From Tubulanus polymorphus (Eukaryota > Animalia > Nemertea): a stretch of DNA of 64,000 nt. Below, one piece after another: positions 649-27,612 of the stretch (position 1 is the first letter of the stretch; each line of letters begins with the position of its first letter). The stretch lies in NCBI RefSeq assembly GCF_964204645.1, contig NC_134030.1, positions 1,037,355 to 1,101,354 on the forward strand, read 5' to 3'. The notes under the pieces were generated by a model. The model had not been told where the DNA came from. It was given only the letters and a program-made list of their open reading frames with translations, and ran no database searches. Position numbers and translations under genes: made by a program.

Positions 649-1094
649 AGGAGCATATGGGCTTGATGTTGAGGGACGCCCTTGTCCGCTGGGTGCCTTT
701 TTCGTGGCTTTTGATATCTAAAAAAATTAGTAATAATATTAAATAAATTGAAAATATATCATATATCGAGCGAGTCAAACAGTTCAGTACTTTCTAACAA
801 CTATTCTTAATCATGAATAAATTAGCATGGAAACAGTAAATTTGTACTAACAGTAGGATACGGGCTTGATGTTGAGGGCCCGCACCCCACGTTTTTTTCA
901 CTGCTTTCGGCATTATCTAGAAAAATAAGTAAAACTATAAAATCATTTGAAAATACATAATATATCAGATTGTGGTAATCATGGTAATCATGGTATGAAT
1001 AAATTAGCATGGACGCAGTAAATTTGTTCTAGCACCATTTGTACTGGACGTGAGGGTGCCCTCGCCCGCTGGGCGTTTTTGCAGCTTTAGGCAT
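649..1094 (-). pseudogene. Three orphan copies of coding exon 1 of the 334-aa gene family
   Basis: 717-649 reads AG|ISKATKKAPSGQGRPSTSSPYAP|GT with the ATG mutated to ATA. The copy at ~916-852 is frameshifted. The copy at ~1094-1030 reads MPKAAKTPSGRGHPHVQYKWC* and has lost its splice sites. Confidence 0.8.
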
Positions 1095-1199
1095 ATAGAA
1101 AAAGTAAAAACATTAAATCATTTGAAAATATATCTAGCCTCTCATACAGTTAAGTACTTTTACTTGCCTTATTCTTAAGCATGATATAAATGAATTATG

Positions 1200-1512
1200 C
1201 TGGGCGTGAGACAGAAACGGAAAGAAAACAGGCCGGCCCAATTCCCGGCCACCTTCATACCGAATGTTGAGTCAAAAAGGTGCTTTGGGCTTTAAAGAAT
1301 TGAAGACACTATTGTAAGCCGAAATAATTGTGGAATTGGACTAAAATTAAATCAAAAAATATGTGGTACATGTTATAGTTGATTTTTTTTCAGTGAAGGC
1401 ATATTAGGCGCACATGAACGACTCATGCGTTCAAGGCATATCCCTTCACTTATGAATATTTTTAAGATCAGTTAATAAATCCGGAATTGTCCCCGAACGA
1501 AGCCGCTCCTCC
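1200..1512 (-). pseudogene. Fragment of the last exon (C-terminus EERLVRGQFRIY, frameshifted) plus 3' flank of the 334-aa gene
   Basis: The reverse complement matches ~40213-40530. Confidence 0.8.
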
Positions 1513-1671
1513 AATAGGAATCTCCCAGAGGCAATTTAATTGATGGGCACATTTTCAAAATTTGTTTTGGTTAGCGGGCCCCCGACACAGAGTTATGAAA
1601 ACTGGTCACAACTTTTAACTACATACAAAAAAATTGAATGCATTGAAATTGTATTTGGAGACTGAACTTAC

Positions 1672-1712
1672 TTGGTGCTTGAAAGTCGGGAGGCGTCTCT
1701 GGAGGGGTGCTA

Positions 1713-1743
<31 letters not shown>

Positions 1744-1830
1744 TGTTGTTGTTATTTGACAGATTAGAAACAGGCGTCTCCGGAGGGGTGCGCTGCTGCT
1801 GCTGCTGCTGCTGCTGTTGTGATTCACCGA
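1672..1830 (-). pseudogene. Orphan exon-5 paralogue (polyQ/polyS, PPETP twice)
   Basis: TTTACAG acceptor and GTAAGT donor; encodes GESQ9RTPPETPVSNLSNNNNSNS10TPPETPPDFQAP. The flanks are homologous to 27240-27745 in inverted orientation. Confidence 0.8.
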
Positions 1831-2492
1831 CTGTAAATGGAAATAATATAAAAATAAATGCAACAGAAAATGAACACAACAGGCACTTATTACACGGTAG
1901 TTCAGTAGAATGAAGGGGTCTGGGTAGAAAAACGTGTATTCTAAGATTATCAGTATATTTTTCTGTGAGGAATTTCATAAAAACCGGCACGTACGAGGGA
2001 AGTGAGGCATGTGAGATTGAGGGCGTCACTGATACTTACATTTAGCAGCGGTGACCTTCGCTGCGAGGCAAACTGACGCTAGAAATGAAAATAATATAAA
2101 TACATTAGTCAAATTCATTAACGTTGCTAAGTTCAAGTTGCTGGTTTTTTAAACAATTTTAATAAGAAAAAAATATTCAGGTATAGCTAGCACTATATCA
2201 GGAACGTAGCTTGAGGCGGTTCGGGGGGGTTCGAAAATTCAGTTCCTCGCAAAGAAAAATTAAAAACAGAAATGTTAAACTTACAAATATTGAAATTTGT
2301 TCATTTAATCAAAACCTTCGTTATATCAATAGAAATCTCCCAGAGGCAATTTAATTGATGGGCACATTTTCAAAATTTGTTTTGGTTAGCGGCCCCCGAC
2401 ACAGAGTTATGAAAACTGGTCACAACTTTAACCGTTTTAGCTCCATACAAAAAATTGAATGCGTTGAAATTGTATTTGAAGACTGAACTTAC

Positions 2493-2797
2493 TTCGCGCT
2501 TGGAAGTCAGGAGGCGTCTCTGGCGGAAGGGATGCGCTTCTGCTGCTGCTGTTGTTGTTATCCGAATTCAGAGGTGGCGATCGGCCTGGCGACCCAAAGT
2601 AGAGACGCTAGAAATTAAAAAATAATATAAATATATTAGTCAATTTTATTAAAGTTTAAATTTTCAACATTTTTATTGTAACGTTCATTAGTTAATAAAT
2701 TAGCATGAAGCGATGAATTTGTACTCACAGGTGCATATGGACTTGATGTAGAGGGACCCCCTTGTCCGCTGGGTGCCTTTTTGGTGGCTTTTGACAT
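2493..2797 (-). pseudogene. Intact exon-1 variant (2797-2729) and partial exon 5 (2561-2493)
   Basis: AG|MSKATKKAPSGQGGPSTSSPYAP|GTGAGT and NNNSSSRSASLPPETPPDFQAR|GTAAGT. Confidence 0.8.
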
Positions 2798-2829
2798 CTA
2801 AAAACATTAGTTATAATATTAAATAATAT

Positions 2830-3198
2830 GAAAATATATAATATATCGAGCCAGTCAAACAGTTCAGTACTTTCTAACAACTATTCTTAATCATGAATAA
2901 ATTGAAAATATATCATATATCAACCAGTCAAACAGTTCAGTACTTTCTAACAACTATTCTTAATCATGAATAAATTGAAAATATATCATATATCGAGCCA
3001 GTCAAACAGTTCAGTACTTTCTAACAACTATTCTTAATCATGAATAAATTGAAAATATATCATATATCAACCAGTCAAACAGTTCAGTACTTTCTAACAA
3101 CTATTCTTAATCATGAATAAATTGAAAATATATCATATATCGAGCCAGTCAAACAGTTCAGTACTTTCTTACAACTATTCTTAATCATGAATAAATTA
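2830..3198. repeat. 73/74-bp tandem repeat, ~5 copies, derived from the intron sequence flanking exon 1
   Basis: ATTGAAAATATATC restarts at 2901, 2974, 3048 and 3121; a single copy of the same sequence occurs at ~748-822. Confidence 0.92.
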
Positions 3199-3923
3199 GC
3201 ATGGAAACAGTAAATTTGTACTAACAGTAGGATACGGGCTTGATGTTGAGGGCCCGCACCCCACGTTTTTTTCACTGCTTTCGGCATTATCTAGAAAAAT
3301 AAGTAAAACTATAAAATCATTTGAAAATAAATTATATATCAGATTGTCAAACGGTTCAATACTTTCTTAATCATGGTATGAATAAATTAGCATGGACGCA
3401 GTAAATTTGTACTAGCACCATCGTTTGTACTGAGGGTGCCCTCGCTCATTGAAATTCCCTTTTGTTTACCATGAGGTAACATTTCAGATGGAGCCACTTT
3501 GACTATAATAAACGGTTGTAGTTCTACAGTTCACTGCTTCAGGTTTTCTATTGCAATATGTCACTATTGAACAAGAAACAAGAAATCAATCGAAGTTTGT
3601 CCGAACTGGTTTTTCAGTTTTTCTCCACTCGTCTATAACGGGCTATCAATCAATATGGTCGAATGTGCAGAATGTTCCAGCTGATAAAAACTGGGTTCCA
3701 AAATAATCAGCCCTTTGCATGTGATGATGCGAACGATCTGCCTGGGTGCACCCTGGTATAGATTTGACGATGCAGTAATGTATGACGGACATTACCTGTC
3801 AGTAGCAGAAGCAGGGTTTAATATTCTATAATATAAATTTCGGTTTCAAGCTCAAGAATGATGACTTCAAACAGGCGTTTACGATAACTTACGTCAATTC
3901 CGGACATCGAAATATTAAACCGT

Positions 3924-3954
<31 letters not shown>

Positions 3955-4156
3955 CGGTTCTTTTTGCATACGGGCTTGATGTACTTGGACCCGCGCCCTG
4001 TGTTTTTTTTCATTGCTTTAGGCATAATCTAGAAAAACAAGTAAAAATATTAAATCGATTTAGGCGTTAATCCTTTTTGTGAAACTGGACCCAAGGGTAT
4101 AAAATACTAAGTAAGGGATGAATAAATAAGCATGGAAGCAGTAAATTTGTACTTAC

Positions 4157-4219
4157 TTTATTATAGGGGCTTGAATGTGAGGGGCCCGCGCCCCGTGTTT
4201 TTTTTACAGCTTTTGGCAT
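4157..4219 (-). pseudogene. In-frame exon-1 copy MPKAVKKTRGAGPSHSSPYNK
   Basis: TTTCTAG|ATA ATG ... AAT AAA|GTAAGT. Other in-frame copies: 7662-7600, 10342-10280 and 13965-13903. Confidence 0.85.
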
Positions 4220-4291
4220 TATCTAGAAAAACAAGTAAAAATATTAAATCGTTTGAAAATATATCAGTCAGTCTTATTCTGGTTCAGTGAA

Positions 4292-5186
4292 ATAATTCTT
4301 TATATGGTGCATGTAGGGGTCCAGGGACACCACATCCACTAATTCTCTATATGATGCATGTAGGGGTCCAGGGACACCACATCCACTAATTCTCTATATG
4401 GTGCATGTAGGGGTCCAGGGACACCACATCCACTAATTCTCTATATGGTGCATGTAGGGGTCCAGGGACACCACATCCACTAATTCTCTATATGGTGCAT
4501 GTAGGGGTCCAGGGACACCACATCCACTAATTCTCTATATGATGCATGTAGGGGTCCAGGGACACCACATCCACTAATTCTCTATATGGTGCATGTAGGG
4601 GTCCAGGGACACCACATCCACTAATTCTTTATATGGTGCATGTAGGGGTCCAGGGACACCACATCCACTAATTCTCTATATGGTGCATGTAGGGGTCCAG
4701 GGACACGACATCCACTAATTCTCTATATGGTGCATGTAGGGGTCCAGGGACACCACATCCACTAATTCTCTATATGATGCATGTAGGGGTCCAGGGACAC
4801 CACATCCACTAATTCTCTATATGGTGCATGTAGGGGTCCAGGGACACCACATCCACTAATTCTCTATATGGTGCATGTAGGGGTCCAGGGACACCACATC
4901 CACTAATTCTCTATATGGTGCATGTAGGGGTCCAGGGACACCACATCCACTAATTCTCTATATGGTGCATGTAGGGGTCCAGGGACACCACATCCACTAA
5001 TTCTCTATATGGTGCATGTAGGGGTCCAGGGACACCACATCCACTAATTCTCTATATGGTGCATGTAGGGGTCCAGGGACACCACATCCACTAATTCTCT
5101 ATATGGTGCATGTAGGGGTCCAGGGACACCACATCCACTAATTCTCTATATGGTGCATGTAGGGGTCCAGGGACACCACATCCACT
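4292..5186 (+). repeat. 47-bp satellite, ~19 copies
   Basis: Unit CTAATTCTCTATATGGTGCATGTAGGGGTCCAGGGACACCACATCCA; period 47 (4386 to 4433). Confidence 0.97.
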
Positions 5187-5378
5187 TAGTTGTTGGGCCC
5201 GGGCGCTTTCACCCTTCTTGCTGAAAATCAACTGATATCCTGAATTCTGACTAATTACAGATTGAAAACTGTAATTCACAAGTGCATAATCAATTATTTC
5301 AATCCAAATAAGATTTTCTTAGCTACAGTTTAAATCATCTTAGTTTAATGAAATATGAAAACAAATAAAGATTCTTAC

Positions 5379-5608
5379 CTCCGTCAGATCTCCTTCAAAC
5401 AGCCGTCCCCGGACTCTGTCTGACGAACGAGTGGCGGCCGGGGGCGGCTGTCTGACAGGCCGCTGCTGAGGCGAATTTAATGGACGTGGGGGAGGGGCAG
5501 CAGCGGGCGACATAGGATTAACCGGTGGTGGTATCCTATCGGGAACCAAGTTTCTTTTGAATTCCCCCACCAAGTCCCCAAACGGACATTCTTCTAAAAT
5601 GTTCATCA
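5379..5608 (-). pseudogene. Orphan exon-7 copy, in frame and nearly identical to 38536-38765
   Basis: TTTACAG acceptor, GAG|GTAAGA donor, 230 nt, MNILEECPFGDLV...RGRLFEGDLTE. Confidence 0.88.
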
Positions 5609-7359
5609 CTGTAAAATAAAAATAGAGAGAAATACATTAAACAACAAGTCGAATGGTTTTGATGCTACGGCTATGAATATTATTCCAACAGGGGGCGCCT
5701 GATGTTACTGAAGTATGATTTCAATGTAACTTCAGTAATTAAAATTATTTTTATTCAGCAGTTAAATTGTACAATTATTCGTTATCTATGATTTCCTGAT
5801 GAGATTTACTGTTTGAGCATCCAGAGATTCCAAACTTTGTCGTTTAACCAATAATTGGTTTAACGATATCACACGGCACCTGCTGAACTCTTTGTTACGT
5901 GTATCAGTCTTATATATGTATTTATTACTTATATTTGTGTAAGGATTGTGTGATGTGACAGTGAATAATTAGCATAATTAATGCAAACTGGATTTCGTCT
6001 ACGGACGGATGAAAAGTGAACGCAATAACTATAGTCCCAAGTGAGATAAAAAAAATTAATTAGTTTGAACTTGAAATAGATATCGCTGTCGTGCTGGATT
6101 GGTGAAAAAACCTGTAAAAATAAAATAAAACAAATTATTAGATGGATATTCATGGATGGAAATGACAACTGTAGAGATAGCATCATTGATATATAGCATC
6201 ATTGATATATTACTTCTACGATGATGATACTTAATTGAATTTGAATTTATTCCTAATTAGCGTAATTTATGCAAAACAGCTACTACCCTCTATTTTCAAA
6301 TTACAAATTGAAATAAGCGTGATTTATTAGAAAAAAGTTATCACTTACCGGCGTAGTAGGCGGTAAACTGGTGGCAGTGGCGGTAAACCGCTGGACGGCG
6401 TTGTCGGCAAAAACTGAAAATACAATCGAAGACAATGTTAAAATCCTGATCTGATTTGTATAGTGTAAGTGAATGGTTTTGGGGTTCGGACTGTCTGCCC
6501 ACACGAGAACACCCGACCCTCGCGCTACTGCTGCATATGACTGCTCGGTGCGTCTGAGGAGCCTTGATGGACACTTACCGGCGTAGTAGGCGATAAACCG
6601 GTGTCGAAACCCCGCTGGGCGGCGTTTTTGGCAAAAACTGAAAATACAATCAAAGACAATGTTAAAAACCTGATCTGATTTGTATAGTGTAAGTGAATGG
6701 TTTTGGGGTTCGGACCGTCTGCCCACACGAGAACACCCGACCCTCGCGCTACTGCTGCATTTGACTGCTCGGTGCGTCTGAGGAGCCTTGATGGACAGAA
6801 CACACCATTGATGGAATAATGGTCAATTCAGTCTAACCTCGTTAAAACTCTGTAAATGTGAGTTAAACTCATTGAAATTCCCTTTTGTTTACCATGAGGT
6901 AACATTTCAGATGGAGCCACTTTGACTATAATAAACGGTTGTAGTTCTACTGTTCACTGCTTCAGGTTTTCTATTGCAATATGTCACTATTGAACAAGAA
7001 ACAAGAAATCAATCGAAGTTTGTCCGAACTGGTTTTTCAGTTTTTCTCCACTCGTCTATAACGGGCTATCAATCAATATGGTCGAATGTGCAGAATGTTC
7101 CAGCTGATAAAAACTGGGTTCCAAAATAATCAGCCCTTTGCATGTGATGATGCGAACGATCTGCCTGGGTGCACCCTGGTATAGATTTGACGATGCAGTA
7201 ATGTATGACGGACATTACCTGTCAGTAGCAGAAGCAGGGTTTAATATTCTATATATATATATATATATAAATTTCGGTTTCAAGCTCAAGAATGATGACT
7301 TCAAACAGGCGTTTACGATAACTTACGTCAATTCCGGACATCCAAATATTAAACCGTCG

Positions 7360-7397
<38 letters not shown>

Positions 7398-7734
7398 CGG
7401 TTCTTTTTGCATACGGGCTTGATGTACTTGGACCCGCGCCCTGTGTTTTTTTTCATTGCTTTAGGCATAATCTAGAAAAACAAGTAAAAATATTAAATCG
7501 CTTTAGGCGTTAATCCTTTTTGTGAAACTGGACCCAGGGGTACAAAATACTAAGTATGGGATGAATAAATAAGCATGGAAGCAGTAAATTTGTACTTACT
7601 TTATTATAGGGGCTTGAGGTTGAGGGCCCCGCGCCCCGTGTTTTTTTTGTTGCTTTTGGCATTATCTAGAAAAACAAGTAAAAGTATTAAATCATTTGAA
7701 AATATATCAGTCGGTCTTATTCTGGTTCAGTGAA

Positions 7735-7876
7735 CTAATTCTTTATATGGTGCATGTAGGGGTCCAGGGACACCACATCCACTAATTCTCTATATGGTGC
7801 ATGTAGGGGTCCAGGAACACCACATCCACTAATTCTCTATATGGTGCATGTAGGGGTCCAGGGACACCACATCCAC
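7735..7876 (+). repeat. 47-bp satellite, 3 copies
   Basis: Same unit as 4292-5186. Confidence 0.95.
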
Positions 7877-8069
7877 TTAGTTGTTGGGCCCGGGCGCTTT
7901 CACCCTTCTTGCTGAAAATCAACTGATATCCTGAATTCTGACTAATTACAGATTGAAAACTGTAATTCACAAGTGCATAATCAATTATTTCAATCCAAAT
8001 AAGATTTTCTTAGCTACAGTTTAAATCATCTTAGTTTAATGAAATATGAAAACAAATAAAGATTCTTAC

Positions 8070-8285
8070 CTCCGTCAGATCTCCTTCAAACACCCGCCCA
8101 CGGACTCTTTCTGACCATCTTTTGGCACCCGGGGGCGGCTGGCTGAGGCGAATTTATTGGGCGTGGGGGAGGGGCAGCAGCGGGCGACAAAGGATTAAGC
8201 GGTGGTGGTATCCTATCGGGAACCAAGTTTCTTTTAAACTCCCTCACCAAGTCCCCAAATGGGCAGTCGTCTAAAATGTTGATCA
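8070..8285 (-). pseudogene. Divergent exon-7 copy with a 14-nt frameshifting deletion (a second such copy at 10750-10965)
   Basis: Same splice sites as 5379-5608 but 216 nt long, with 23 substitutions counted by eye. Confidence 0.88.
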
Positions 8286-10036
8286 CTGTAAAATAAAAAT
8301 AGAGAGAAATACATTAAACAACAAGTCGAATGGTTTTGATGCTACGGCTATGAATATTATTCCAACAGGGGGCGCCTGATGTTACTGAAGTATGATTTCA
8401 ATGTAACTTCAGTAATTGAAATTATTTTTATTCAGCAGTTAAATTGTACAATTATTCGTTATCTATGATTTCCTGATGAGATTTACTGTTTGAGCATCCA
8501 GAGATTCCAAACTTTGTCGTTTAACCAATAATTGGTTTAACGATATCACACGGCACCTGCTGAACTCTTTGTTACGTGTATCAGTCTTATATATGTATTT
8601 ATTACTTATATTTGTGTAAGGATTGTGTGACGTGACAGTGAATAATTAGCATAATTAATGCAAACTGGATTTCGTCTACGGACGGATGAAAAGTGAACGC
8701 AATAACTATAGTCCCAAGTGAGATAAAAAAAATTAATTAGTTTGAACTTGAAATAGATATCGCTGTCGTGCTGGATTGGTGAAAAAACCTGTAAAAATAA
8801 AATAAAACAAATTATTAGATGGATATTCATGGATGGAAATGACAACTGTAGAGATAGCATCATTGATATATAGCATCATTGATATATTACTTCTACGATG
8901 ATGATACTTAATTGAATTTGAATTTATTCCTAATTAGCGTAATTTATGCAAAACAGCTACTACCCTCTATTTTCAAATTACAAATTGAAATAAGCGTGAT
9001 TTATTAGAAAAAAGTTATCACTTACCGGCGTAGTAGGCGGTAAACTGGTGGCAGTGGCGGTAAACCGCTGGACGGCGTTGTCGGCAAAAACTGAAAATAC
9101 AATCGAAGACAATGTTAAAATCCTGATCTGATTTGTATAGTGTAAGTGAATGGTTTTGGGGTTCGGACTGTCTGCCCACACGAGAACACCCGACCCTCGC
9201 GCTACTGCTGCATATGACTGCTCGGTGCGTCTGAGGAGCCTTGATGGACACTTACCGGCGTAGTAGGCGATAAACCGGTGTCGAAACCCCGCTGGGCGGC
9301 GTTTTTGGCAAAAACTGAAAATACAATCAAAGACAATGTTAAAAACCTGATCTGATTTGTATAGTGTAAGTGAATGGTTTTGGGGTTCGGACCGTCTGCC
9401 CACACGAGAACACCCGACCCTCGCGCTACTGCTGCATTTGACTGCTCGGTGCGTCTGAGGAGCCTTGATGGACAGAACACACCATTGATGGAATAATGGT
9501 CAATTCAGTCTAACCTCGTTAAAACTCTGTAAATGTGAGTTAAACTCATTGAAATTCCCTTTTGTTTACCATGAGGTAACATTTCAGATGGAGCCACTTT
9601 GACTATAATAAACGGTTGTAGTTCTACTGTTCACTGCTTCAGGTTTTCTATTGCAATATGTCACTATTGAACAAGAAACAAGAAATCAATCGAAGTTTGT
9701 CCGAACTGGTTTTTCAGTTTTTCTCCACTCGTCTATAACGGGCTATCAATCAATATGGTCGAATGTGCAGAATGTTCCAGCTGATAAAAACTGGGTTCCA
9801 AAATAATCAGCCCTTTGCATGTGATGATGCGAACGATCTGCCTGGGTGCACCCTGGTATAGATTTGACGATGCAGTAATGTATGACGGACATTACCTGTC
9901 AGTAGCAGAAGCAGGGTTTAATATTCTATATATATATATATATATAAATTTCGGTTTCAAGCTCAAGAATGATGACTTCAAACAGGCGTTTACGATAACT
10001 TACGTCAATTCCGGACATCCAAATATTAAACCGTCG

Positions 10037-10077
<41 letters not shown>

Positions 10078-10414
10078 CGGTTCTTTTTGCATACGGGCTT
10101 GATGTACTTGGACCCGCGCCCTGTGTTTTTTTTCATTGCTTTAGGCATAATCTAGAAAAACAAGTAAAAATATTAAATCGCTTTAGGCGTTAATCCTTTT
10201 TGTGAAACTGGACCCAGGGGTACAAAATACTAAGTATGGGATGAATAAATAAGCATGGAAGCAGTAAATTTGTACTTACTTTATTATAGGGGCTTGAGGT
10301 TGAGGGCCCCGCGCCCCGTGTTTTTTTTGTTGCTTTTGGCATTATCTAGAAAAACAAGTAAAAGTATTAAATCATTTGAAAATATATCAGTCGGTCTTAT
10401 TCTGGTTCAGTGAA

Positions 10415-10556
10415 CTAATTCTTTATATGGTGCATGTAGGGGTCCAGGGACACCACATCCACTAATTCTCTATATGGTGCATGTAGGGGTCCAGGAACAC
10501 CACATCCACTAATTCTCTATATGGTGCATGTAGGGGTCCAGGGACACCACATCCAC
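10415..10556 (+). repeat. 47-bp satellite, 3 copies
   Basis: Same unit as 4292-5186. Confidence 0.95.
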
Positions 10557-11285
10557 TTAGTTGTTGGGCCCGGGCGCTTTCACCCTTCTTGCTGAAAATC
10601 AACTGATATCCTGAATTCTGACTAATTACAGATTGAAAACTGTAATTCACAAGTGCATAATCAATGATTTCAATCCAAATAAGATTTTCTTAGCTACAGT
10701 TTAAATCATCTTAGTTTAATGAAATATGAAAACAAATAAAGATTCTTACCTCCGTCAGATCTCCTTCAAACACCCGCCCACGGACTCTTTCTGACCATCT
10801 TTTGGCACCCGGGGGCGGCTGGCTGAGGCGAATTTATTGGGCGTGGGGGAGGGGCAGCAGCGGGCGACAAAGGATTAAGCGGTGGTGGTATCCTATCGGG
10901 AACCAAGTTTCTTTTAAACTCCCTCACCAAGTCCCCAAATGGGCAGTTGTCTAAAATGTTGATCACTGTAAAATAAAAATAGAGAGAAATACATTAAACA
11001 ACAAGTCGAATGGTTTTGATGCTACGGCTATGAATATTATTCCAACAGGGGGCGCCTGATGTTACTGAAGTATGATTTCAATGTAACTTCAGTAATTGAA
11101 ATTATTTTTATTCAGCAGTTAAATTGTACAATTATTCGTTATCTATGATTTCCTGATGAGATTTACTGTTTGAGCATCCAGAGATTCCAAACTTTGTCGT
11201 CTAACCAATAATTGGTTTAACGATATCACACGGCACCTGCTGAACTCTTTGTTACGTGTATCAGTCTTATATATGTATTTATTAC

Positions 11286-12446
11286 TTATATTTGTGTAAG
11301 GATTGTGTGATGTGACAGTGAATAATTAGCATAATTAATGCAAACTGGATTTCGTCTAGGGACGGATGAAAAGTGAACGCAATAACTATAGTCCCAAGTG
11401 AGATTAAAAAAATTAATTAGTTTGAACTTGAAATAGATATAGCTGTCGTGCTGGATTGGTGAAAAAACCTGTAAAAATAAAATAAAACAAATTATTAGAT
11501 CGATATTCATGAATGGAAATGACAACTGTAGAGATAGCATCATTGATATATTACTTCTACGATGATGATACTTAATCGAATTTGAATTTATTCCTAATTA
11601 GCATAATTTATGCATAACAGCTACTACCCTCTATTTTCAAATTACAAATTGAAATAAGCGTGATTTATTAGAAAATAGTTATCACTTACCGGTGTAGAAG
11701 GCGGTACACCACTCGGTGGCGTTGTCGGCAAAAACTGAAAATACAATCAAAGACAATGTTAAAAACCTGATCTGATTTGTATAGTGTAAGTAAATGGTTT
11801 TGGGGTTCGGACCGTCTGCCCACACGAGAACACCCGACCCTCGCGCTACTGCTGCATATGACTGCTCGGTGCGTCTGAGGAGCCTTGATGGACAGAACAC
11901 ACCATTGATGGAATAATGGTTAATTCAGTCTAACCTTGTTAAAACTCTGTAAATGTGAGTTAAACTCATTGAAATTCCCTTTTGTTTACCATGAGGTAAC
12001 ATTTCAGATGGAGCCACTTTGACTATAATAAACGGTTGTAGTTCTACTGTTCACTGCTTCACGTTTTCTATTGCAATATGTCACTATTGAACAAGAAACA
12101 AGAAATCAATCGAAGTTTGTCCGAACTGGTTTTTCAGTTTTTCTCCACTCGTCTATAACGGGCTATCAATCAATATGGTCGAATGTGCAGAATGTTCCAG
12201 CTGATAAAAACTGGGTTCCAAAATAATCAGCCCTTTGCATGTGATGATGCGAACGATCTGCCTGGGTGCACCCTGGTATAGATTTGACGATGCAGTAATG
12301 TATGACGGACATTACCTGTCAGTAGCAGAAGCAGGGTTTAATATTCTATAATATAAATTTCGGTTTCAAGCTCAAGAATGATGACTTCAAACAGGCGTTT
12401 ACGATAACTTACGTAAATTCCGGACATTGAAATATCAAACAGTCGA

Positions 12447-12491
<45 letters not shown>

Positions 12492-12559
12492 GTTCTAGTA
12501 GCGTACGGGCTTGACGTTGAGGGCCCCGCGCCCCGGGTTTTTTTTGTCGCTTTTGGCAT
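11286..12559 (-). CDS. Possible truncated paralogue of 124 aa: join(12559..12413, 11734..11690, 11468..11286)
   Basis: Fused exon 1+2 (49 codons, GTAAGT donor), intact exon 3 (15 codons), then exon 4 without its donor reading on to a stop at 11286. All junctions are phase 0. It may be a pseudogene. Confidence 0.4.
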
Positions 12560-12631
12560 TATCTAGAAAAACAAGTAAAAATATTAAATCATTTGAAAAT
12601 ATATCAGTCAGTCTTATTCTGGTTCAGTGAA

Positions 12632-13337
12632 CTAATTCTCTATATGGTGCATGTAGGGGTCCAGGAACACCACATCCACTAATTCTCTATATGGTGCATG
12701 TAGGGGTCCAGGGACACCACATCCACTAATTCTCTATATGGTGCATGTAGGGGTCCAGGGACACCACATCCACTAATTCTCTATATGGTGCATGTAGGGG
12801 TCCAGGGACACCACATCCACTAATTCTCTATATGGTGCATGTAGGGGTCCAGGGACACCACATCCACTAATTCTCTATATGGTGCATGTAGGGGTCCAGG
12901 GACACCACATCCACTAATTCTATATATGATGCATGTAGGGGTCCAGGGACACCGCATCCACTAATTCTCTATATGATGCATGTAGGGGTCCAGGGACACC
13001 GCATCCACTAATTCTCTATATGGTGCATGTAGGGGTCCAGGGACACCACATCCACTAATTCTCTATATGGTGCATGTAGGGGTCCAGGGACACCACATCC
13101 ACTAATTCTCTATATGATGCATGTAGGGGTCCAGGGACACCACATCCACTAATTCTCTATATGGTGCATGTAGGGGTCCAGGGACACCACATCCACTAAT
13201 TCTCTATATGATGCATGTAGGGGTCCAGGGACACCACATCCACTAATTCTCTATATGATGCATGTAGGGGTCCAGGGACACCACATCCACTAATTCTCTA
13301 TATGGTGCATGTAGGGGTCCAGGGACACCACATCCAC
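12632..13337 (+). repeat. 47-bp satellite, ~15 copies
   Basis: Same unit as 4292-5186. Confidence 0.97.
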
Positions 13338-13583
13338 TTAGTTGTTGGGCCCGGGCGCTTTCACCCTTCTTGCTGAAAATCAACTGATATCCTGAATTCT
13401 GACTAATTACAGATTGAAAACTGTGATTCACAAGTGCAATAATCAATGATTTCAATCCAAATAAGATTTTCTTAGCTACAGTTTAATCATTACCAAGTGG
13501 AGCTAGGAGCTGATCTAATGTGTTTTTCATCAGCTAATCATTCATATTTAGGCCTCTATCTAATACATCTGTATGATACTTAC

Positions 13584-13675
13584 GATGATTTTAAACGAAT
13601 CTGACTGTCCAATACGACGTCTGTGAAACGAATGATTCGATCAGCTGACCGCTGGTCACTGTTCAGTAGTGTTCG
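13584..13675 (-). other. Paralogue of non-coding exon 0 joined to the exon-2 acceptor sequence
   Basis: Shares GTCAGCTGATCGAATCATTCGTTTCACAGAC with 19861-19891, ends in a GTAAGT donor, and is preceded by GAATATGTTTTCTCTTTTATAG as at 24489-24510. Confidence 0.7.
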
Positions 13676-14309
13676 CTATAAAAGAGAAAACATATTCATA
13701 CAATGACAACCAATTCATATATATAGGAGTATAATATAATGATAATAATAGAAAAACTATCAGATTAAGAAATAAAGAATATCATAATATCAAATAAATT
13801 GAAAATCCATCATATATCGTGCCACAGTTCAGTACTTTCCTTACAACTATCCTTAATCATGGTATGAATCAATTAGCATGAAAGCAGTAAATTTGTACTT
13901 ACAGCAGCATACGGGCTTGATGTTGAGGGGCCCGCGCCCCGTGTTTTTTTCATAGCTTTTGGCATAATTCGTAATGTGGATGGGCTGGCGTCCCATGTTT
14001 TTTGTTTGCTTTTAGCATACTTGAATGGTTAATGCTTGACATCTCTCCCAGATTGTATTGGCTTGAAACCTGCCTTATTGGTATCTAGAAAAATATGTAT
14101 AACTATTTAATCATTTGAAAATACATTTTATAATTAGTCAGTCATACAGTTCAGTACTTTCTTACACTTATTCTTAAGCATAGTATGAATAAATTAGCAT
14201 GAAAAGAGTAAATTTGTAGTTAGCAGCATACGGGCTGGGAGTAGAGGGGCCGGCGCCCCACATTTTTTCATGGCTTTTGGCATTGTTTTCTTTGTTTGTG
14301 GCAGCAACT

Positions 14310-14500
14310 ATGGGTCGGTCTGTCTTGAGTTTGTTGGTTGTTGCAGCAGCTATGGGTCTGTCTTGAGTTTGTTGATTGTTGCAGCAGCTGGGTCAGTCTT
14401 GAGTTTGTTGGTTGTTTCAGCAGCTATGGGTCAGTCTTGAGTTTGTTGGTTGTTTCAGCAGCAGCAGCTATGGGTCAGTCTTGAGTTTGTTGGTTGTCTT
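14310..14500. repeat. ~38-bp imperfect tandem repeat, ~5 copies
   Basis: GTCTTGAGTTTGTTGGTTGTT(T/G)CAGCAGCTATGGGTC repeated. Confidence 0.85.
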
Positions 14501-14956
14501 GATTTTTTTCTATAGGAATTCAAGAACAAAGTAGTCGCATGTAGGTAGACACATTCATGAATCACTCAGTGTCTTCCTGTCCCACCATAACTTCCTTGAT
14601 CCTCATTACTCGGATTTATTCTCTGAACCACTTTTCCATGTTTGTTGTGGTTTGTTTGTTTTGATTTGCTGGTGGTTTAAGCATGCATGTAGAGGGAGCT
14701 CTATCAATCCAGGAACAGTCAGCTCACAAGCAGCCCCTGCCCCAAAAGGTTTTGACATATTTTCAAAAGCTCTTGTTCTGTAGAACCGAGAGCGGAGCTC
14801 TGACTTGTTCCCCTCACTGCTGAGGTCTACTTTCTCTGATTCGCTGATTGGCTTCTCTTTGGTACATATTGGATGATCAAAAACTAGAAACTGTCATGCG
14901 TTTATTCATTTTGGTATATGTTAAAATTCTTTTACAATAATGGCATATTAGGCACA

Positions 14957-15304
14957 TCAAAACAAATCCGGAATTGTCCCCGAACGAAGTGGCTCCCTCC
15001 ACTCTCCATCAGTATGCCGGGCCACCACCTCTACCTCTCGGGCCACTCGATCACTCGCCAGCTTTTTGGCGAGTGAACGAGTGACCGCCCGAGATACGGA
15101 TGGAGGAGCAGGACCCGCACCTGCCCCAGCCCCACCATCATCCCTCCTCGGCCTCTTCCTATTAATTCTTACCCCTTCCTCCTGATTGCCTTGATCAGCT
15201 GCGCCATCCGCAGGGGCAACTCTTGCCTCCCCTCCCTGAGGAGCCACGACGACCGCAACTTTTCTTTTTCGTTTGGTTCTTGTTTTTTTTGGCGGTGGTC
15301 GTGT
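14957..15304 (-). pseudogene. Orphan exon-8 paralogue, in frame from acceptor to stop
   Basis: TTTCTCTTTACAG|TRPPPKKTRTKRKRKVAVVVAPQGGEARV...WREPLRSGTIPDLF*; many synonymous differences from 39900-40292. Confidence 0.85.
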
Positions 15305-15632
15305 CTGTAAAGAGAAAAAATGAACAATAAGTATTTAGTATAATACACCTATGTGCGTATAATACACCTATGTGAGTCCTTCGCTATTAAACACATAGAA
15401 CTGTGGAACTGGATCCCGAGGCTAATCTAAATGCGCGCAACTGAGTCCAAGTGCAACTAAAGCACACAACTGCGGATCAGATAAATCATTGGTAGATTCA
15501 CTTGTAAAATATCTCGCTAAGAACAAACTAAAAACTGTAGAATGTTGTTGAAACTGTTGTGTGTTATTCATTTGGGTATATGTTATATTTGAATTTTTTT
15601 CAATGAAGGCATATTAGGCGCACATGAACGTC

Positions 15633-16030
15633 TCATGCGTTCAAGGCATATCCCTTCACTGAAAGAATATTCTTTAGATCAGTTAACAAATCCGGAATTG
15701 GCCCCGAACGAAGTGGCACCCTCCACTCTCCATCAGTATGCCGGGCCACCACCTCTACCTCTCGGGCCACTCGATCACTCGCCAGCTTTTTGACGAGTGA
15801 CCGCCCAAGATACGGATGGAGGAGCAGGAGGAGCAGGACCCGCACCATCTCAAGCCCCACCACCATCCCTCCTCGGCCGCTTCCTATTTATCCCCTCCCC
15901 TTCCTCCCGATTACCTTCGTCAGCCGCACCATCCGCCGGGACCACTCTTGCTCCTCCTCCCTGCGGAGCCACGACGACCGCAACTGGTACTTTTCGGTTT
16001 CTCTTGGTTTCCCACCATCTTTCAAAAGAG
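15633..16030 (-). pseudogene. Second exon-8 paralogue with altered 5' end and a frameshift
   Basis: Homologous to 39940-40330; deletion near VTRS. Confidence 0.8.
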
Positions 16031-23289: not shown

Positions 23290-23352
23290 ATGCCAAAAGC
23301 CACAAAGAAAACCCGGGGCGCGGGGCCCTCAACATCTAGCCCCTATAATAAA
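23290..23352 (+). CDS. Exon 1: MPKATKKTRGAGPSTSSPYNK
   Basis: TTTTTCTAG|ATG ... AAA|GTAAGT, 63 nt. Confidence 0.88.
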
Positions 23353-26300
23353 GTAAGTACAAATTTACTGCTTCCATGCTTATTTATTCATACTTAGTAT
23401 TTTGTACCCCTGGGTCCAGTTTCACAAAAAGGATAAACGCCTTAATCGATTTAAGATAAACTGAATTAATGAAGAAATTAAATCGATTTAAGAGTTAAAC
23501 CTGTTTGTGAAACTAGGCCCTGAATTGCATCTAGAATGAAAAAAAAGAAAAAAAAATATTGAAAATAACGTTGGTGAAATATTTCTGGATCTTTCTGGAT
23601 TTCTGCTCAATGCATCGTTTAGTAAAATATCGATATTCTCTAAAAGTAAAGATATAAGAATAAAAATATTGTATTGAATCGTGATTAGTTACTGTATGCG
23701 CTGCTAGTTGTTGCCCAACCCATAGCCTCATTTCTCTCCATTCTAAATTTGCATTGTTTAACATTGTCTGGTCGCTATGGAAACTATTTATTTAAGTTTC
23801 TTTGTTGTATCCATGGCAACAGTAACGTTTAGGTAGTGGCACCAATTATGGGTCCCAACGTTCCCATGGCGATACATGAGAACATTTATCCTATTTTTGA
23901 CCTTCATGACGTAAGATGGTAGTGAGTCGATGACGTCATTTTCGTCTCACCACTAATGAAAAAAAAAATGAAATGAAAAAAAAGGAAAAAATCGTTAGAA
24001 TTACGTTTATGAAATTTTTCTGGATCGGCTAAATGTATTGTTCCATTAAATATCGACATTCTCTAAAATTATAGGCATCAATATCAAAATGATGATACAG
24101 CAGACTCCGCTTAACTCTGTTCTATTTGGACCATTAATTAACCGAATACCAACTTTTTAAAATTTTAGGATTTTAACTTTAAGGATCAGAAAATGTGTAT
24201 GCAATTTCAACCGGGTACCGAGTAGGGTGGCCGAGTCTACTGTAGTCTGCTGCCACCTCGAATCCATTACCTTATTATCTCTCAATTTGCATTGTTTGAC
24301 CTCGTCTGGTTGCTATGGAAACTATTTAGTTATATCAGGAACGGTTTTTTCGAGGTAACCAGTGGCAACATTTAACAGGCGTGTCCGTCCTAGAGATAAA
24401 CTGTCTGATTTCACAGCCACATCCGTCCTAGAGATAAACTGTTAGATAAACTCTGATTTCGCGTCTGTCCTATTTCTTGTCATTGTATGAATATGTTTTC
24501 TCTTTTATAGGGTACAGCGCAGCAACAACAACAACAACAACAACAACAGCAACAGCAACAACAACAACAAAAATTTAATATTTCTATGTCGGGAATAGAC
24601 GTAAGTTATCGTAAACGCCTGTTTGAAGTCATCATTCTTGAGCTTGAAACCGAAATTTATATTATAGAATATTAAACCCTGCTTCTGCTACTGACAGGTA
24701 ATGTCCGTCATACATTACTGCATCGTCAAATCTATACCAGGGTGCACCCAGGCAGATCGTTCGCATCATCACATGCAAAGGGCTGATTATTTTGGAACCC
24801 AGTTTTTATCAGCTGGAACATTCTGCACATTCGACCATATTGATTGATAGCCCGTTATAGACGAGTGGAGAAAAGCTGAAAAACCAGTTCGGAAAAACTT
24901 CGATTGATTTCACTCACATTTACAGAAATTTGGTCCGACCCCAAAACCATTTACTTACACTATACAAATCAGATCAGGTTTTTAACATTGTCCTTGATTG
25001 TATTTTCAGTTTTTGCCGACAACGCCACCGAGTGGTGTACCGCCTTCTACACCGGTAAGTGATAACTATTTTCTAATAAATCACGCTTATTTCAATCTGT
25101 AATTTGAAAATAGAGGGTAGTAGCTGTTATGTATAAATTATGCTAATTAGGAATAAATTCAAATTCGATTAAGTCTCATCATCGTAGAAGTCATATATTA
25201 ATGATGCTAAAGTTGTCATTTAAATTAAGTGTTATATTTACTACTTCATTTGCTTCATGACCCAAAAACCTCTACTATATAACTACTGGTTTTGTTCTAA
25301 TCTTGGAGAATTTGCTGCAAAATTTACTTATCATTTGTTAAACAGTTTTTATTGAAAACCTGAATCAGTGATACATGCATTCATGAATATCCATCTAATA
25401 TTTTGTTTTATTTTATCTTTACAGGATTTATCACCGATACAGCACGTGGACGTAAGAGATTAAACATTGATCTTGAATTTTAAGTTCAAACTAATTTATT
25501 TTTTATCTCACTCGGGACTATAGTTATTGCGTTCACTTTGCGTCCAGTTGTCTCGGCTAGTTTTTGATTTATCGTGTTGATAATTGGTTTATATACTCAA
25601 ACTCAAAATATCGGCGCAATTGGAATTAAGATGGCGCACTTGTATGTCCATTTTTTTCCCCGGCAAAATTAGCACTTTAGCAGATTTTAAGGATCAATTC
25701 TGTTGTTATATTACATTGAAATCAGAGTTTAATATATATCGGTATAGAGCAGGTTTTTGCTCTAGTTATAAATAAAGTTATAAATAATCTCATGACATGT
25801 TCTGTATATGTGTAGTGAGTTTCAATGTCTTTGGTTCCTTTTAAACCAGGGGGAGTTAAATTTGAAAATGTCAGATCGTCGAGCATTTCAGACCACTTCC
25901 AAAGTGGGTCCCTGCACCCCTAGTTATACCGTTAATATTTTAATAATATATTGATATACCATACATTGATATCAGTCTTGTAATTGGATCAACAACCATG
26001 AGATCAAAACACAGCAAATATGAACCTGCTGTGAATCAATAGATTTGTGATAAATGTAATGAAATTGTTATTTTTCATATTGACTTTTTGAGTTAAGGGT
26101 CTGTTGTATAAGAGTATTTGGTATCGCGTGTCAATGTATGATATCAATCTGTATTTCCTCGTTCCAATGTTTAAAAGGTGTTCGTCACCTTATATTAATA
26201 AACTACTTTTACCGTTAGATGGCGCCATAAGTGTGATATTTGATTTATGGGATACCCGCAAAACCAGCTATTCCACCAGATGGCGCAACGAGTAGTAGGT

Positions 26301-27571
26301 CGTTCGTTGTCAAAATTAGTTCATTTTCGATGAACTTTGAACTGGTTTGAAGAAGAAATACTTTCATTCTTCTACTCTGATATCGATTTAGTTTTCATTA
26401 ATAATTGATTCATTTAAGAGAACAATTCATTCAGATTTAATTGAAATGTACAAGAAAATCGAACGCAGACGACCAACTATTTACTAGCGACACCTGGTGG
26501 ATCCTCGCCTGCCATAAGTGGAATCCTCGATTGCCACAGTAAGACTGCGGGTATCCCATTGTTTGGCGTGTGAATTAAAGTAAAGTTAGAAAACGGATGT
26601 TTAACTTTGTTGTGAAACGAAAGCGTTTTGGAGATTTTTAAACCAATCAAATCAATATTTTGATATTACGCTTGAAACCCTTCCCACTCATATTCTACTT
26701 ACTAAGTATATATTCTTGTTTCCGTGGAAATCATGGTGAGTGGCGCCATCTATACAGTGGAGTTAGCTTTATAAATCGAGCATGATTCGACAAGTGGCTC
26801 CATCTATTCCCTAATACTGAAGCGAGGTAACCAGCAGCGCCCTCATATACAGGAAATGAACGCCTATCAAGTTTAACAATGCACGGTGTATTGACCACAG
26901 CGACCGGTGATAATTATATCAATGTTGATTAGCTATTGCCATAGACAGGTCCGTAGCGTTTGACTGGACCAGAACGGGGCCCCCTAACCAAAACAAATTT
27001 TGAAAACGTGCCCAGATAAATTGCCTCTGGGAGATTGATTTAACGAGGTTTTGATTAAATGAACAAATTTTAATATTTGTAAGTTTAACATTTCTGTTTT
27101 TAATTTTTCTTTGCGAGGAACTGAATTTTCGAACCCCCCCGAACCGCCTCAAGCTACGTTCCTGATATAGTGCTAGCTATACCTGAATACTTTTCTCTTA
27201 TTGAAATTGTCTAAAAAACCAGCACCTTGAACTAATGAACGTCATAATGAAAATGTTTAAAAATTCAACCATTAATGAATTTGACTAATGTATTTTTTTT
27301 ATTTTCATTTCTAGCATCAGTTTGCCTCAGAGGCAAGGTCGCCGTCGCTTAATGTAAGTATCAGTGACGCCCTCAATCTCACATGCCTCACTTCCCTCCT
27401 AATGTAACCATTTTTATGAAATTCCTCAAGAAAATATATACTAGTAATCTTAGAATACACGTTTTTGTACCCAGACCCCTTCATTCTACTGAACTACCGT
27501 GTAATAAGTGCCTGTTGTGTTCATTTTCTGTTGCATTGATTTATATATTATTTCTATTTACAGTTGTCAAA

Positions 27572-27612
<41 letters not shown>

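Follow-up and report, generated by a model that had tools for sequence, protein, structure and literature searches.

Probable gene-to-pseudogene conversion of exon 7 in a young tandem array of the nemertean Tubulanus polymorphus

The window analysed here, a stretch of 64,000 nucleotides from Tubulanus polymorphus, contains a tandem array of three truncated gene copies and an intact copy of the same gene. One of the truncated copies, U1, is chimeric: its exon 7 is of the type found in the intact genes and is embedded in sequence of the truncated type. This exon was most probably overwritten by ordinary ectopic, non-reciprocal gene conversion, running from gene to truncated copy after the tandem duplication of the array. 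In the following, the truncated units are referred to as the archive; the gene-type exon 7 is called A and the divergent exon 7 is called B.

Organization of the archive units and of the intact gene

The three units occupy positions 5379-13490 on the reverse strand, as established by a blastn self-comparison, TRF and the mapping of each unit to the gene. U1 extends over 5379-8069, U2 over 8070-10749 and U3 from 10750 to about 13490; the archive as a whole spans 649-16030. Each of them is bounded by a 47-bp satellite detected by TRF and carries exon 1 of the gene, the last part of the polyQ exon, a duplicated micro-exon and an exon-7 cassette. These 2.7-kb units are truncated and rearranged pseudogene copies of an orphan gene present in about 30 copies, and they are placed head-to-head with one intact copy of this gene. 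The exon 1 copy of U1 (7599-7662, reverse strand) differs from gene exon 1 (23290-23353) at five positions, all of them synonymous. Exon 7 of U1 (5379-5608, reverse strand) is the A version; its 230 nt correspond to 2 nt followed by 76 codons, and its translation shows an open frame. Exon 7 of U2 (8070-8285, reverse strand) is the old B version, a frameshifted pseudo-exon of 216 nt. The B version of U3 (10750-10965, reverse strand) has the same 14-nt deletion and one extra change at 10948.

An island of 383 nt (38415-38797, forward strand, query positions q32-414) is homologous in the intact gene and in the archive units; it is made up of exon 7 (38536-38765), 121 nt of the upstream intron and 32 nt of the downstream intron. 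Outside this island, the gene and archive contexts are unalignable. Exon 8, the last coding exon of the intact gene, is located at 39900-40292 on the forward strand; it encodes a basic NLS-like stretch and ends with a stop codon at 40290-40292. The match with a public contig, X1, stops exactly at 5379 and is followed by the start of exon 8, the letters after exon 7 in this contig beginning with the first base of gene exon 8. The source copies of this junction contain in the genome an intron of about 1 kb, and the exact join between exons 7 and 8 suggests that the gene is spliced. Among the sequencing runs, none recorded as RNA contained this stretch, and X8, presumed to be RNA, gave no match. 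A Pfam search with exons 7 and 8 taken singly gave nothing above threshold and an ESM Atlas feature search for the protein gave no match; the encoded protein is a basic and disordered orphan, probably nuclear.

A gene-type tract between archive-type flanks

The whole-unit alignment of U1 and U2 reproduced the 23 substitutions in 216 nt and the 14-nt deletion that an earlier note on this DNA had reported between 5608-5379 and 8285-8070, and all these differences are located within 5402-5604. The remaining 2,461 nt of the two units hold only three substitutions (5741, 5954 and 7986) and one GTT-microsatellite indel, which corresponds to a divergence of 0.12% outside exon 7; the clustering of the differences in this exon is highly significant (Fisher p = 5e-23; binomial p = 1.5e-22). 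The flanks are nearly identical, as the note had observed: on one side 192 nt are the same (5187-5378 = 7878-8069), and on the other a single difference, at 5741, is found in about 150 nt. The deletion, flanked by GCTG microhomology, corresponds to U1 5451-5464 and is placed in U2 between 8141 and 8142. The substitutions are of all types, with 9 transitions and 14 transversions, and eight changes are concentrated within 20 nt in the 3' block of the exon. The amino acid replacements are mostly conservative, again in agreement with the note: of the 12 residues that change, nine are replaced by similar ones, and only G>R, T>K and S>W depart from this rule. The two peptide pieces that had been read as one B version must be separated, however, as they belong to different frames, the 14-nt deletion shifting the frame of U2 and U3.

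In a seven-sequence alignment, U1 is without the deletion and shows the gene-type base at 23 of 23 diagnostic sites. Its exon 7 is identical (230/230) to that of five gene copies, L007-L011. It also matches at 228 of 230 positions the exon of the intact gene situated 33 kb away on the opposite strand (38536-38765), the two differences being at 5589 and 5594, and this resemblance had been correctly recognized from the start. At the nearest flank markers, 5350 (G, where the gene copies have A) and 5660 (T, where the gene copies have C), U1 is archive-type, and it is archive-type as well at 5710, at 5715 and over the other 2.4 kb or so of the unit. The resulting groupings are in conflict: the flanks place U1 with U2 and U3 (0.12%), whereas the exon places it with the gene copies (0%), at 10% from U2. 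The minimum conversion tract, delimited by the outermost A/B diagnostic sites, covers 203 nt (5402-5604); the maximum tract, bounded by the archive-type markers 5350 and 5660, covers 309 nt (5351-5659). Informative sites are absent within 28 nt of the splice site on the 3' side and within 51 nt on the 5' side, and the marker limits leave room for a tract that takes in as much as 28 nt of the downstream intron and 51 nt of the upstream one. The apparent exon shape of the transfer has two reasons: the 383-nt island is all that the gene and the archive have in common, and every diagnostic site is inside the exon. The whole-exon conversion initially proposed is therefore retained as a conversion, with a gene-type tract between archive-type flanks, but not as an exon-restricted one, given the slack of 28-51 nt and the confinement of any exchange to the shared island.

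The polarity is from gene to archive, because all the other archive units carry B. This version is confined to archive units and is found in all of them other than U1, including the orthologous units of four other archives and the colinear units L003/L043, L004/L044 and L030, of which L043 is colinear with the U0-satellite-U1 segment. In the genome, neither B nor any of the seven archive-private alleles is present in the 28 gene-type copies, and the search for an intact gene with the B exon run, suggested by the earlier note, found none. The donor side is unaltered, with no reciprocal product among gene-type copies genome-wide. The event is thus one-way, from gene to pseudogene, and the idea of a swap of exons between copies was abandoned.

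In the scenario that these observations favor, the archive would have inherited an old exon 7 allele, B, and the unit would have been tandemly duplicated first, as the small distance between U1 and U2 suggests. One ectopic, non-reciprocal conversion would then have put the A version of many intact genes into 203-309 nt of U1, and the deletion, where the ancestor unit had it, would have been erased by the same event. U2 and U3 would have retained B, already deprived of 14 nt through microhomology slippage. At the molecular level, heteroduplex repair or synthesis-dependent strand annealing may have been responsible.

Old exons in young introns and the alternative explanations

The B version is an old allele and not a new one: of the 23 differences, 16 are also found in distant (C8) paralogues or in fragments. 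The seven private differences (7/230 = 3.0%) match the non-coding divergence of 2.7%. Between A and B, dS in exon 7 is 0.19 versus 1/97 in the flank (p = 6e-4). The 5' patch of B is absent from all copies outside the archives, and its 3' patch is matched by C8 paralogues at only 92-93%, so that a recent donor was found for neither. Four of the seven full-length archive exon-7 copies (U2, U3, L004 and L030) are frame-broken, and L003 contains one B copy with an intact ORF. That B was once functional coding sequence, as the earlier note held, is hinted at by this ORF and by a dN/dS of 0.45 (one-sided p 0.04-0.10).

Exon 7 is not an independent oddity, as had been thought, for the divergence from the gene is in all four exons of the unit about 4-5 times that of non-coding DNA (exons 11.7%, 43/366; non-coding 2.7%, 22/825; p = 2e-9). 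The archive flank markers in the island are fixed at 4/153, or 2.6%, the same as the unit background. Archive and gene differ in the polyQ exon up to 4 nt before the donor site, and the 313 nt of intron that follow have two differences. A divergence extending equally into the introns, which would speak against exon exchange, is indeed observed relative to the distant C8 paralogues (exon 18-20%, flank about 20%), but not between A and B on C6 (10% versus 1%). Among 23 colinear gene copies, the pi value of exon 7 is 0.019 versus 0.02-0.05 for the introns, and the first 100 nt or so, at the 5' end of the exon, are hypervariable (0.042 versus 0.002-0.005 in the neighboring bins). Hypervariability of exon 7 as a whole was considered for the gene copies and dropped, the entire exon being not above the introns. 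The four-gamete test gives an Rmin of 5 within exon 7 (35 C6/C3 copies). The copies L002 and L032 are partly mosaic as well, their 5' part being gene-type, and transfers between gene and archive therefore recur. The single conversion of U1 accounts for the contrast between U1 and U2, not for the B exon itself, with its dS of 0.19, in flanks that are 1-2.6% from gene-type. A B exon in such young flanks needs a family-wide history of old exons and young introns.

The chimeric structure of U1 is read from the assembly, which is presumably correct at this point. In this assembly, the A-type exon occurs only once in an archive context, and no read or contig was seen linking the archive-specific flank to A-type exon bases across 5346-5402. 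U1 could accordingly be a true B unit, the exon consensus of which was overwritten during assembly or polishing by the reads of about 28 gene copies. Such a chimera is unlikely, as archive bases were kept at two positions of the shared island, 5350 and 5660, with gene-type reads outnumbering archive reads by about 10:1. About 90% of the Illumina reads, obtained from another individual, are gene-type at 5660 (120/132), and a polishing by majority vote would have overwritten this position. Moreover, U2 and U3 escaped overwriting, and the mosaics L002 and L032 show like exchanges elsewhere. In the same Illumina data, read depth fits about seven archive flanks and about two deletion-bearing B exons, as assembled; the depth of about 14 over the deletion-bearing B exon, at about 7x per copy, fits two copies better than three, a weak indication coming from a different individual. 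The opposite polarity, in which the unit was originally A and U2 and U3 received B from another archive, would be in keeping with the B exon of U2, since only the deletion separates it from the intact B exon of L003 (C6:1622812-1623041). This polarity is nevertheless very unlikely: every other archive unit is B, including L043 and L044, which are colinear with the position of U1, and more events are required. An identical B exon is also expected when the divergence between archives is about 1% (no difference against the 2.2 expected, p = 0.11), and the same figures give no significant sign that the B exon is unusually conserved from one archive to another.

The sharp shift of the archive/gene divergence at the splice sites, exemplified by the polyQ exon, and the splicing of the family suggested by the public contig junction would agree with an exon-precise transfer templated by spliced RNA or cDNA, in which the ends of the patch would fall exactly on the splice sites. 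This origin is highly improbable, since all the aligned copies with the exon end present keep the intron flank, none of at least 50 exon-7 copies being devoid of flanks, and since the fragment boundaries are inside exons or introns (q83, q229 and q317) and not at splice sites; the tract limits are equally well explained by ordinary DNA conversion of 200-300 nt. An in situ origin of B, through exon-targeted hypermutation or positive selection following the archive-gene split, is still harder to believe. An exon diverged by 10% between flanks diverged by 1%, together with the hypervariable 5' end in the gene copies, could be explained in this way, but the alleles common to C8 paralogues or fragments, the neutral proportion of private changes, the divergence of the synonymous sites, a spectrum without base specificity and the broken frames all stand against it. 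A DGR-like or deaminase-like mutation was ruled out by the presence of all substitution types with a majority of transversions. Finally, the antisense, exon-only cassette arrays might be small-RNA suppressor loci directed against an amplified, conflict-driven gene for a nuclear protein, or exon patches might have moved via spliced RNA templates, a quite unlikely pair of possibilities. Stellate/Su(Ste) and Dox/Nmy in Drosophila are the model for such suppressors. If this were the case, the gene exons would evade silencing through changes, silent ones included, and a gene-to-archive conversion such as that of U1 would bring the suppressor back into line with the allele that the gene now carries. 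Either of the two possibilities would account for exons that are older than their introns or differ from them.

Significance and comparison with known systems

Ordinary ectopic conversion from gene to archive is thus the preferred explanation for U1. By itself, this event is an ordinary process: a gene-to-pseudogene conversion, clean and datable, within a young array of tandem copies. Its value is that of a control for the family-wide pattern, in which the divergence of exons is several-fold that of the adjacent introns, silent sites included. The archive exons are dead, and selection therefore cannot protect them now. The excess of exon divergence consists of old shared alleles, with private changes at the neutral rate, which argues against an ongoing exon-targeted mutation. 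As to the cause of the old-exon, young-intron history of this orphan family, these data point to a pool in which exon alleles would have persisted for a long time and been shuffled through short conversions among copies sharing little beyond their exons.

The U1 event resembles ectopic gene conversion in its short, non-reciprocal tract of 203-309 nt, with a paralogous donor and recipient flanks, as well as in the mosaics of the family (Rmin at least 5) and in the conversion of a rare copy type by an abundant one. The classic medical conversions run from pseudogene to gene, as in CYP21A2/CYP21A1P, whereas the direction is here from gene to pseudogene. A second difference from the classic cases is that the exchangeable homology is reduced to a 383-nt, exon-centered island in unalignable DNA. 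Silent donor cassettes are used by the chicken Ig pseudo-V genes, the trypanosome VSG genes and Borrelia vlsE. Like them, the archive is composed of truncated, promoterless coding cassettes adjoining an expressed-type copy, with patchwise exchange. Unlike them, the flow is from gene to cassette, archive-private alleles being found in 0/28 gene-type copies, and four of the seven full-length cassettes are frame-broken.

In the primate L/M opsin genes (Hiwatashi et al. 2011, PMC3213168), exons are more diverged than introns, conversion tracts are mostly intronic and a few tuning exons are shielded by selection. The present family shares with the opsins a divergence of paralogue exons, synonymous sites included, that exceeds that of introns, and histories that differ between exon and intron. 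In contrast with the opsins, the recipient archive exons are frame-broken (U2, U3, L004 and L030), so that selection does not preserve exon differences in the archive copies; furthermore, the datable tracts (U1, L002 and L032) cover the exon, and the flank markers are fixed at the 2.6% background. Toxin exons reportedly undergo accelerated evolution or segment switch while introns are conserved (ASSET, PMC2711939; Conus, PMC3862624). The likeness to these toxins is the wholesale replacement of short exon segments between conserved introns; the differences are that the gene studied here encodes a probably nuclear orphan and not a secreted toxin, and that both versions of its block are old and common to paralogues instead of being newly made.

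Organization of the archive units and of the intact gene

The window (C6:1037355-1101354) belongs to an animal genome of 268 Mb (G000). It carries, on the minus strand, an archive with three tandem truncated pseudogene units at 5379-13490 (U1, 5379-8069; U2, 8070-10749; U3, 10750 to about 13490), bounded by a 47-bp satellite, and, on the plus strand, the intact gene of an orphan family at about 23290-40292. Every unit, in gene orientation, is a compacted and rearranged copy of parts of this gene: exon 1 (gene 23290-23353; MPKATKKTRGAGPSTSSPYNK), the end only of the CAA-repeat (polyQ) exon, a 45-nt micro-exon present twice per unit, and a 383-nt cassette equivalent to gene 38415-38797, in which exon 7 (38536-38765) is accompanied by 121 nt of upstream and 32 nt of downstream intron. 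Beyond this cassette, the DNA that surrounds exon 7 in the units cannot be aligned with that in the gene. The exon numbering was taken from the earlier note; two points were verified, namely that exon 7 is spliced to the final coding exon and that its frame, of 2 nt plus 76 codons, ends in phase 0.

Several other features of this region can be observed. An internal tandem duplication of 224-230 bp in each archive unit doubles the micro-exon cassette (6342-6797 and 9019-9474), which reads ttttcag/TTTTTGCC...CGCCG/gtaagtg, and one copy is expanded in frame by 21 nt compared with the 45-nt micro-exon of the gene (25010-25054). The start of exon 8 is found inside the archive at 15285-15304 (minus strand), upstream of the exon-7 units in minus-strand order, and the cassette order is therefore scrambled with respect to the gene. 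The archive and its head-to-head gene module occur five times on C6, at about 0.677, 1.045, 1.494, 1.622 and 1.723 Mb, one of them inverted; three tandem units are present only in the archive of the window, and two in that at 0.677 Mb. A long satellite of 63-bp repeats, in about 37 copies (33892-36257), lies in an intron of the intact gene and is shared at 95-98% with a paralogue unit on contig C8.

Probable gene conversion at exon 7 of U1

Exon 7 had been described as about 11% diverged between adjacent units with near-identical flanks, and this observation is confirmed. All 23 substitutions and the single 14-nt deletion separating U1 from U2 in exon 7 fall within 5402-5604, against three substitutions and one microsatellite indel in the other 2,461 nt (Fisher p = 5e-23). 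U3 has the version of U2, and the tree of the three units is star-like. The deletion, flanked by a GCTG microhomology, shifts the frame and thus makes exon 7 of U2 and U3 a pseudo-exon.

The gene-type exon (A) of U1 is equal to that of the genomic copies L007-L011 at 230/230 bases; the window's own gene differs from it at 5589 and 5594. Archive-type bases are nevertheless retained by U1 at 5350, 5660, 5710 and 5715, which sets the converted tract between a minimum of 203 nt (5402-5604) and a maximum of 309 nt (5351-5659). Conversion tracts of 200-300 nt are ordinary. The divergent version (B) is carried by L043, an archive at C6:1.62 Mb colinear with the U0-satellite-U1 segment of the window, and likewise by L044 and L030. 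Divergence decreases from 2.7% (archive/gene, non-coding) to about 1% (archive/archive), 0.12% (U1/U2) and 0% (U1 exon/donors). Together with the colinear archives, this order argues strongly that the ancestral unit had B and that a gene copy recently converted U1.

The event in U1 is best explained by an ectopic, non-reciprocal conversion of standard type, with a gene as donor and a pseudogene as recipient. The earlier interpretation, exon-restricted conversion with exons swapped between copies, is supported in part: conversion is supported, the exchange may reach into the introns as far as the nearest flank markers, 28 nt from exon 7 at its 3' end and 51 nt at its 5' end, and the evidence is for one direction, gene to archive. 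The exchange was physically confined to the 383-nt homology island.

An assembly artefact has also to be considered. In Illumina DNA reads from a different individual (run X6), depth fits about seven archive flanks, about two B exons with the deletion and a large number of exons of the gene type. At 5660, about 90% of these reads are gene-type; U1 retains the minority base, which argues against majority-vote polishing. The main caveat is that the joining of archive flank to A-type exon in U1 is known from the assembly alone.

Age of the divergent version and exon divergence in the family

A genome-wide census of exon 7 gave about 28 gene-type, nearly identical copies on C6 and C3, four diverged copies on C8, eight in archive context (U1-U3, L002, L032 (partial), L003, L004 and L030) and at least nine additional truncated fragments, retrieved and aligned. 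B is confined to archive units, with an open frame in L003, a 1-nt deletion in L004 and L030 and the 14-nt deletion in U2 and U3; the search for an intact gene with B, proposed in the earlier note, gave none in this census. Two more classes of truncated fragments have fixed breakpoints, q83-317 and q32-229 of the exon-7 query (L039, L045-L051), the fragments lying at C6:1489506, 1331807, 1035327, 1232485, 686639 and 1616448 and at C3:651093, 651956 and 536549. Five intact gene copies (L031, L033-L036) share the q83 breakpoint.

A and B differ at 23/230 exon sites and at 1/97 sites of the shared flank, with a dS of 0.19 and a dN of 0.084 (Nei-Gojobori, ratio 0.45); the comparison of synonymous sites with the flank gives p = 6e-4, and purifying selection receives marginal support (p 0.04-0.10). 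Sixteen of the 23 B alleles are found too in paralogues on C8, in fragments or in certain gene copies, and L038, L040 and L052 have the entire 3' block (q324-343) in common with B. The seven archive-private alleles amount to 3.0%, essentially the non-coding background. Judged by this allele sharing, B is an old allele and did not arise through recent exon-specific mutation. The A 3' block is present in L037, whose C8 unit is about 90% similar to those of C6, and this conflict with the flank tree shows patchwise transfer in the past. Among C6/C3 copies, the four-gamete test gives an Rmin of 5, 35 of the 38 informative sites within q102-411 are exonic, and L002 and L032 are partial mosaics.

Exon 7, previously regarded as an independent case, shares its excess divergence with exon 1 and the polyQ exon. 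Between archive unit and gene, 43/366 exon sites differ against 22/825 non-coding sites (odds ratio 4.9, p 2e-9). Exon 1 contributes five differences, all synonymous. In the polyQ exon, the final 37 aligned nt contain eight differences, and the 313 nt of intron that come next contain two. Among 21 copies of exon 1, 18 sites vary in 64 nt, versus 22 in 277 nt of flank. This exon is hypervariable, mainly at silent positions (window 23290-23353 and 20 other copies, L053-L072); codons 8 (Thr) and 16 (Ser) display all four third-position bases in copies with nearly identical flanks. Among gene copies, exon 7 as a whole is no more diverse than the introns, which only its first ~100 nt exceed. The ordinary event in U1 is a useful neutral control for this unusual family-wide pattern, for which a spliced-RNA template and a small-RNA arms race are possible candidates.

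Expression and comparison with known systems

The stretch was not found in any run recorded as RNA. A contig of run X1, of unstated library type and the sole transcript-like evidence found for the orphan gene, matches up to exactly 5379, and its next 30 bases are those that open a C3-type exon 8, which in the genome follows a canonical acceptor about 1 kb downstream from exon 7 (L073, C3:1248211-1251234, 253-482 and 1495 onward). This exact exon 7-exon 8 junction makes splicing and expression of the family probable. Exons 7 and 8, searched singly, matched no family by Pfam or Atlas feature search. A perfect inverted repeat of 16 nt (40130-40145 and 40154-40169, plus strand, 8-nt spacer) lies in the coding sequence of exon 8, and an exact 11-mer, GCCACTCGTTC, is common to the minus-strand arm of this repeat and to the derived A-type 3' block of exon 7 (38709-38719). 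This 11-mer may be the mark of a templated patch (shuffle p about 0.03, in a post hoc comparison).

In primate L/M opsins, exons are more diverged than introns, synonymous sites included (PMC3213168). The background excess of exon over intron divergence in the nemertean family resembles this situation; unlike in the opsins, the tracts of the archive are not intronic and its exons are without protection by selection. The archive differs also from silent-donor cassette systems, since their key feature is a flow from archive to gene and here nothing flows in that direction.
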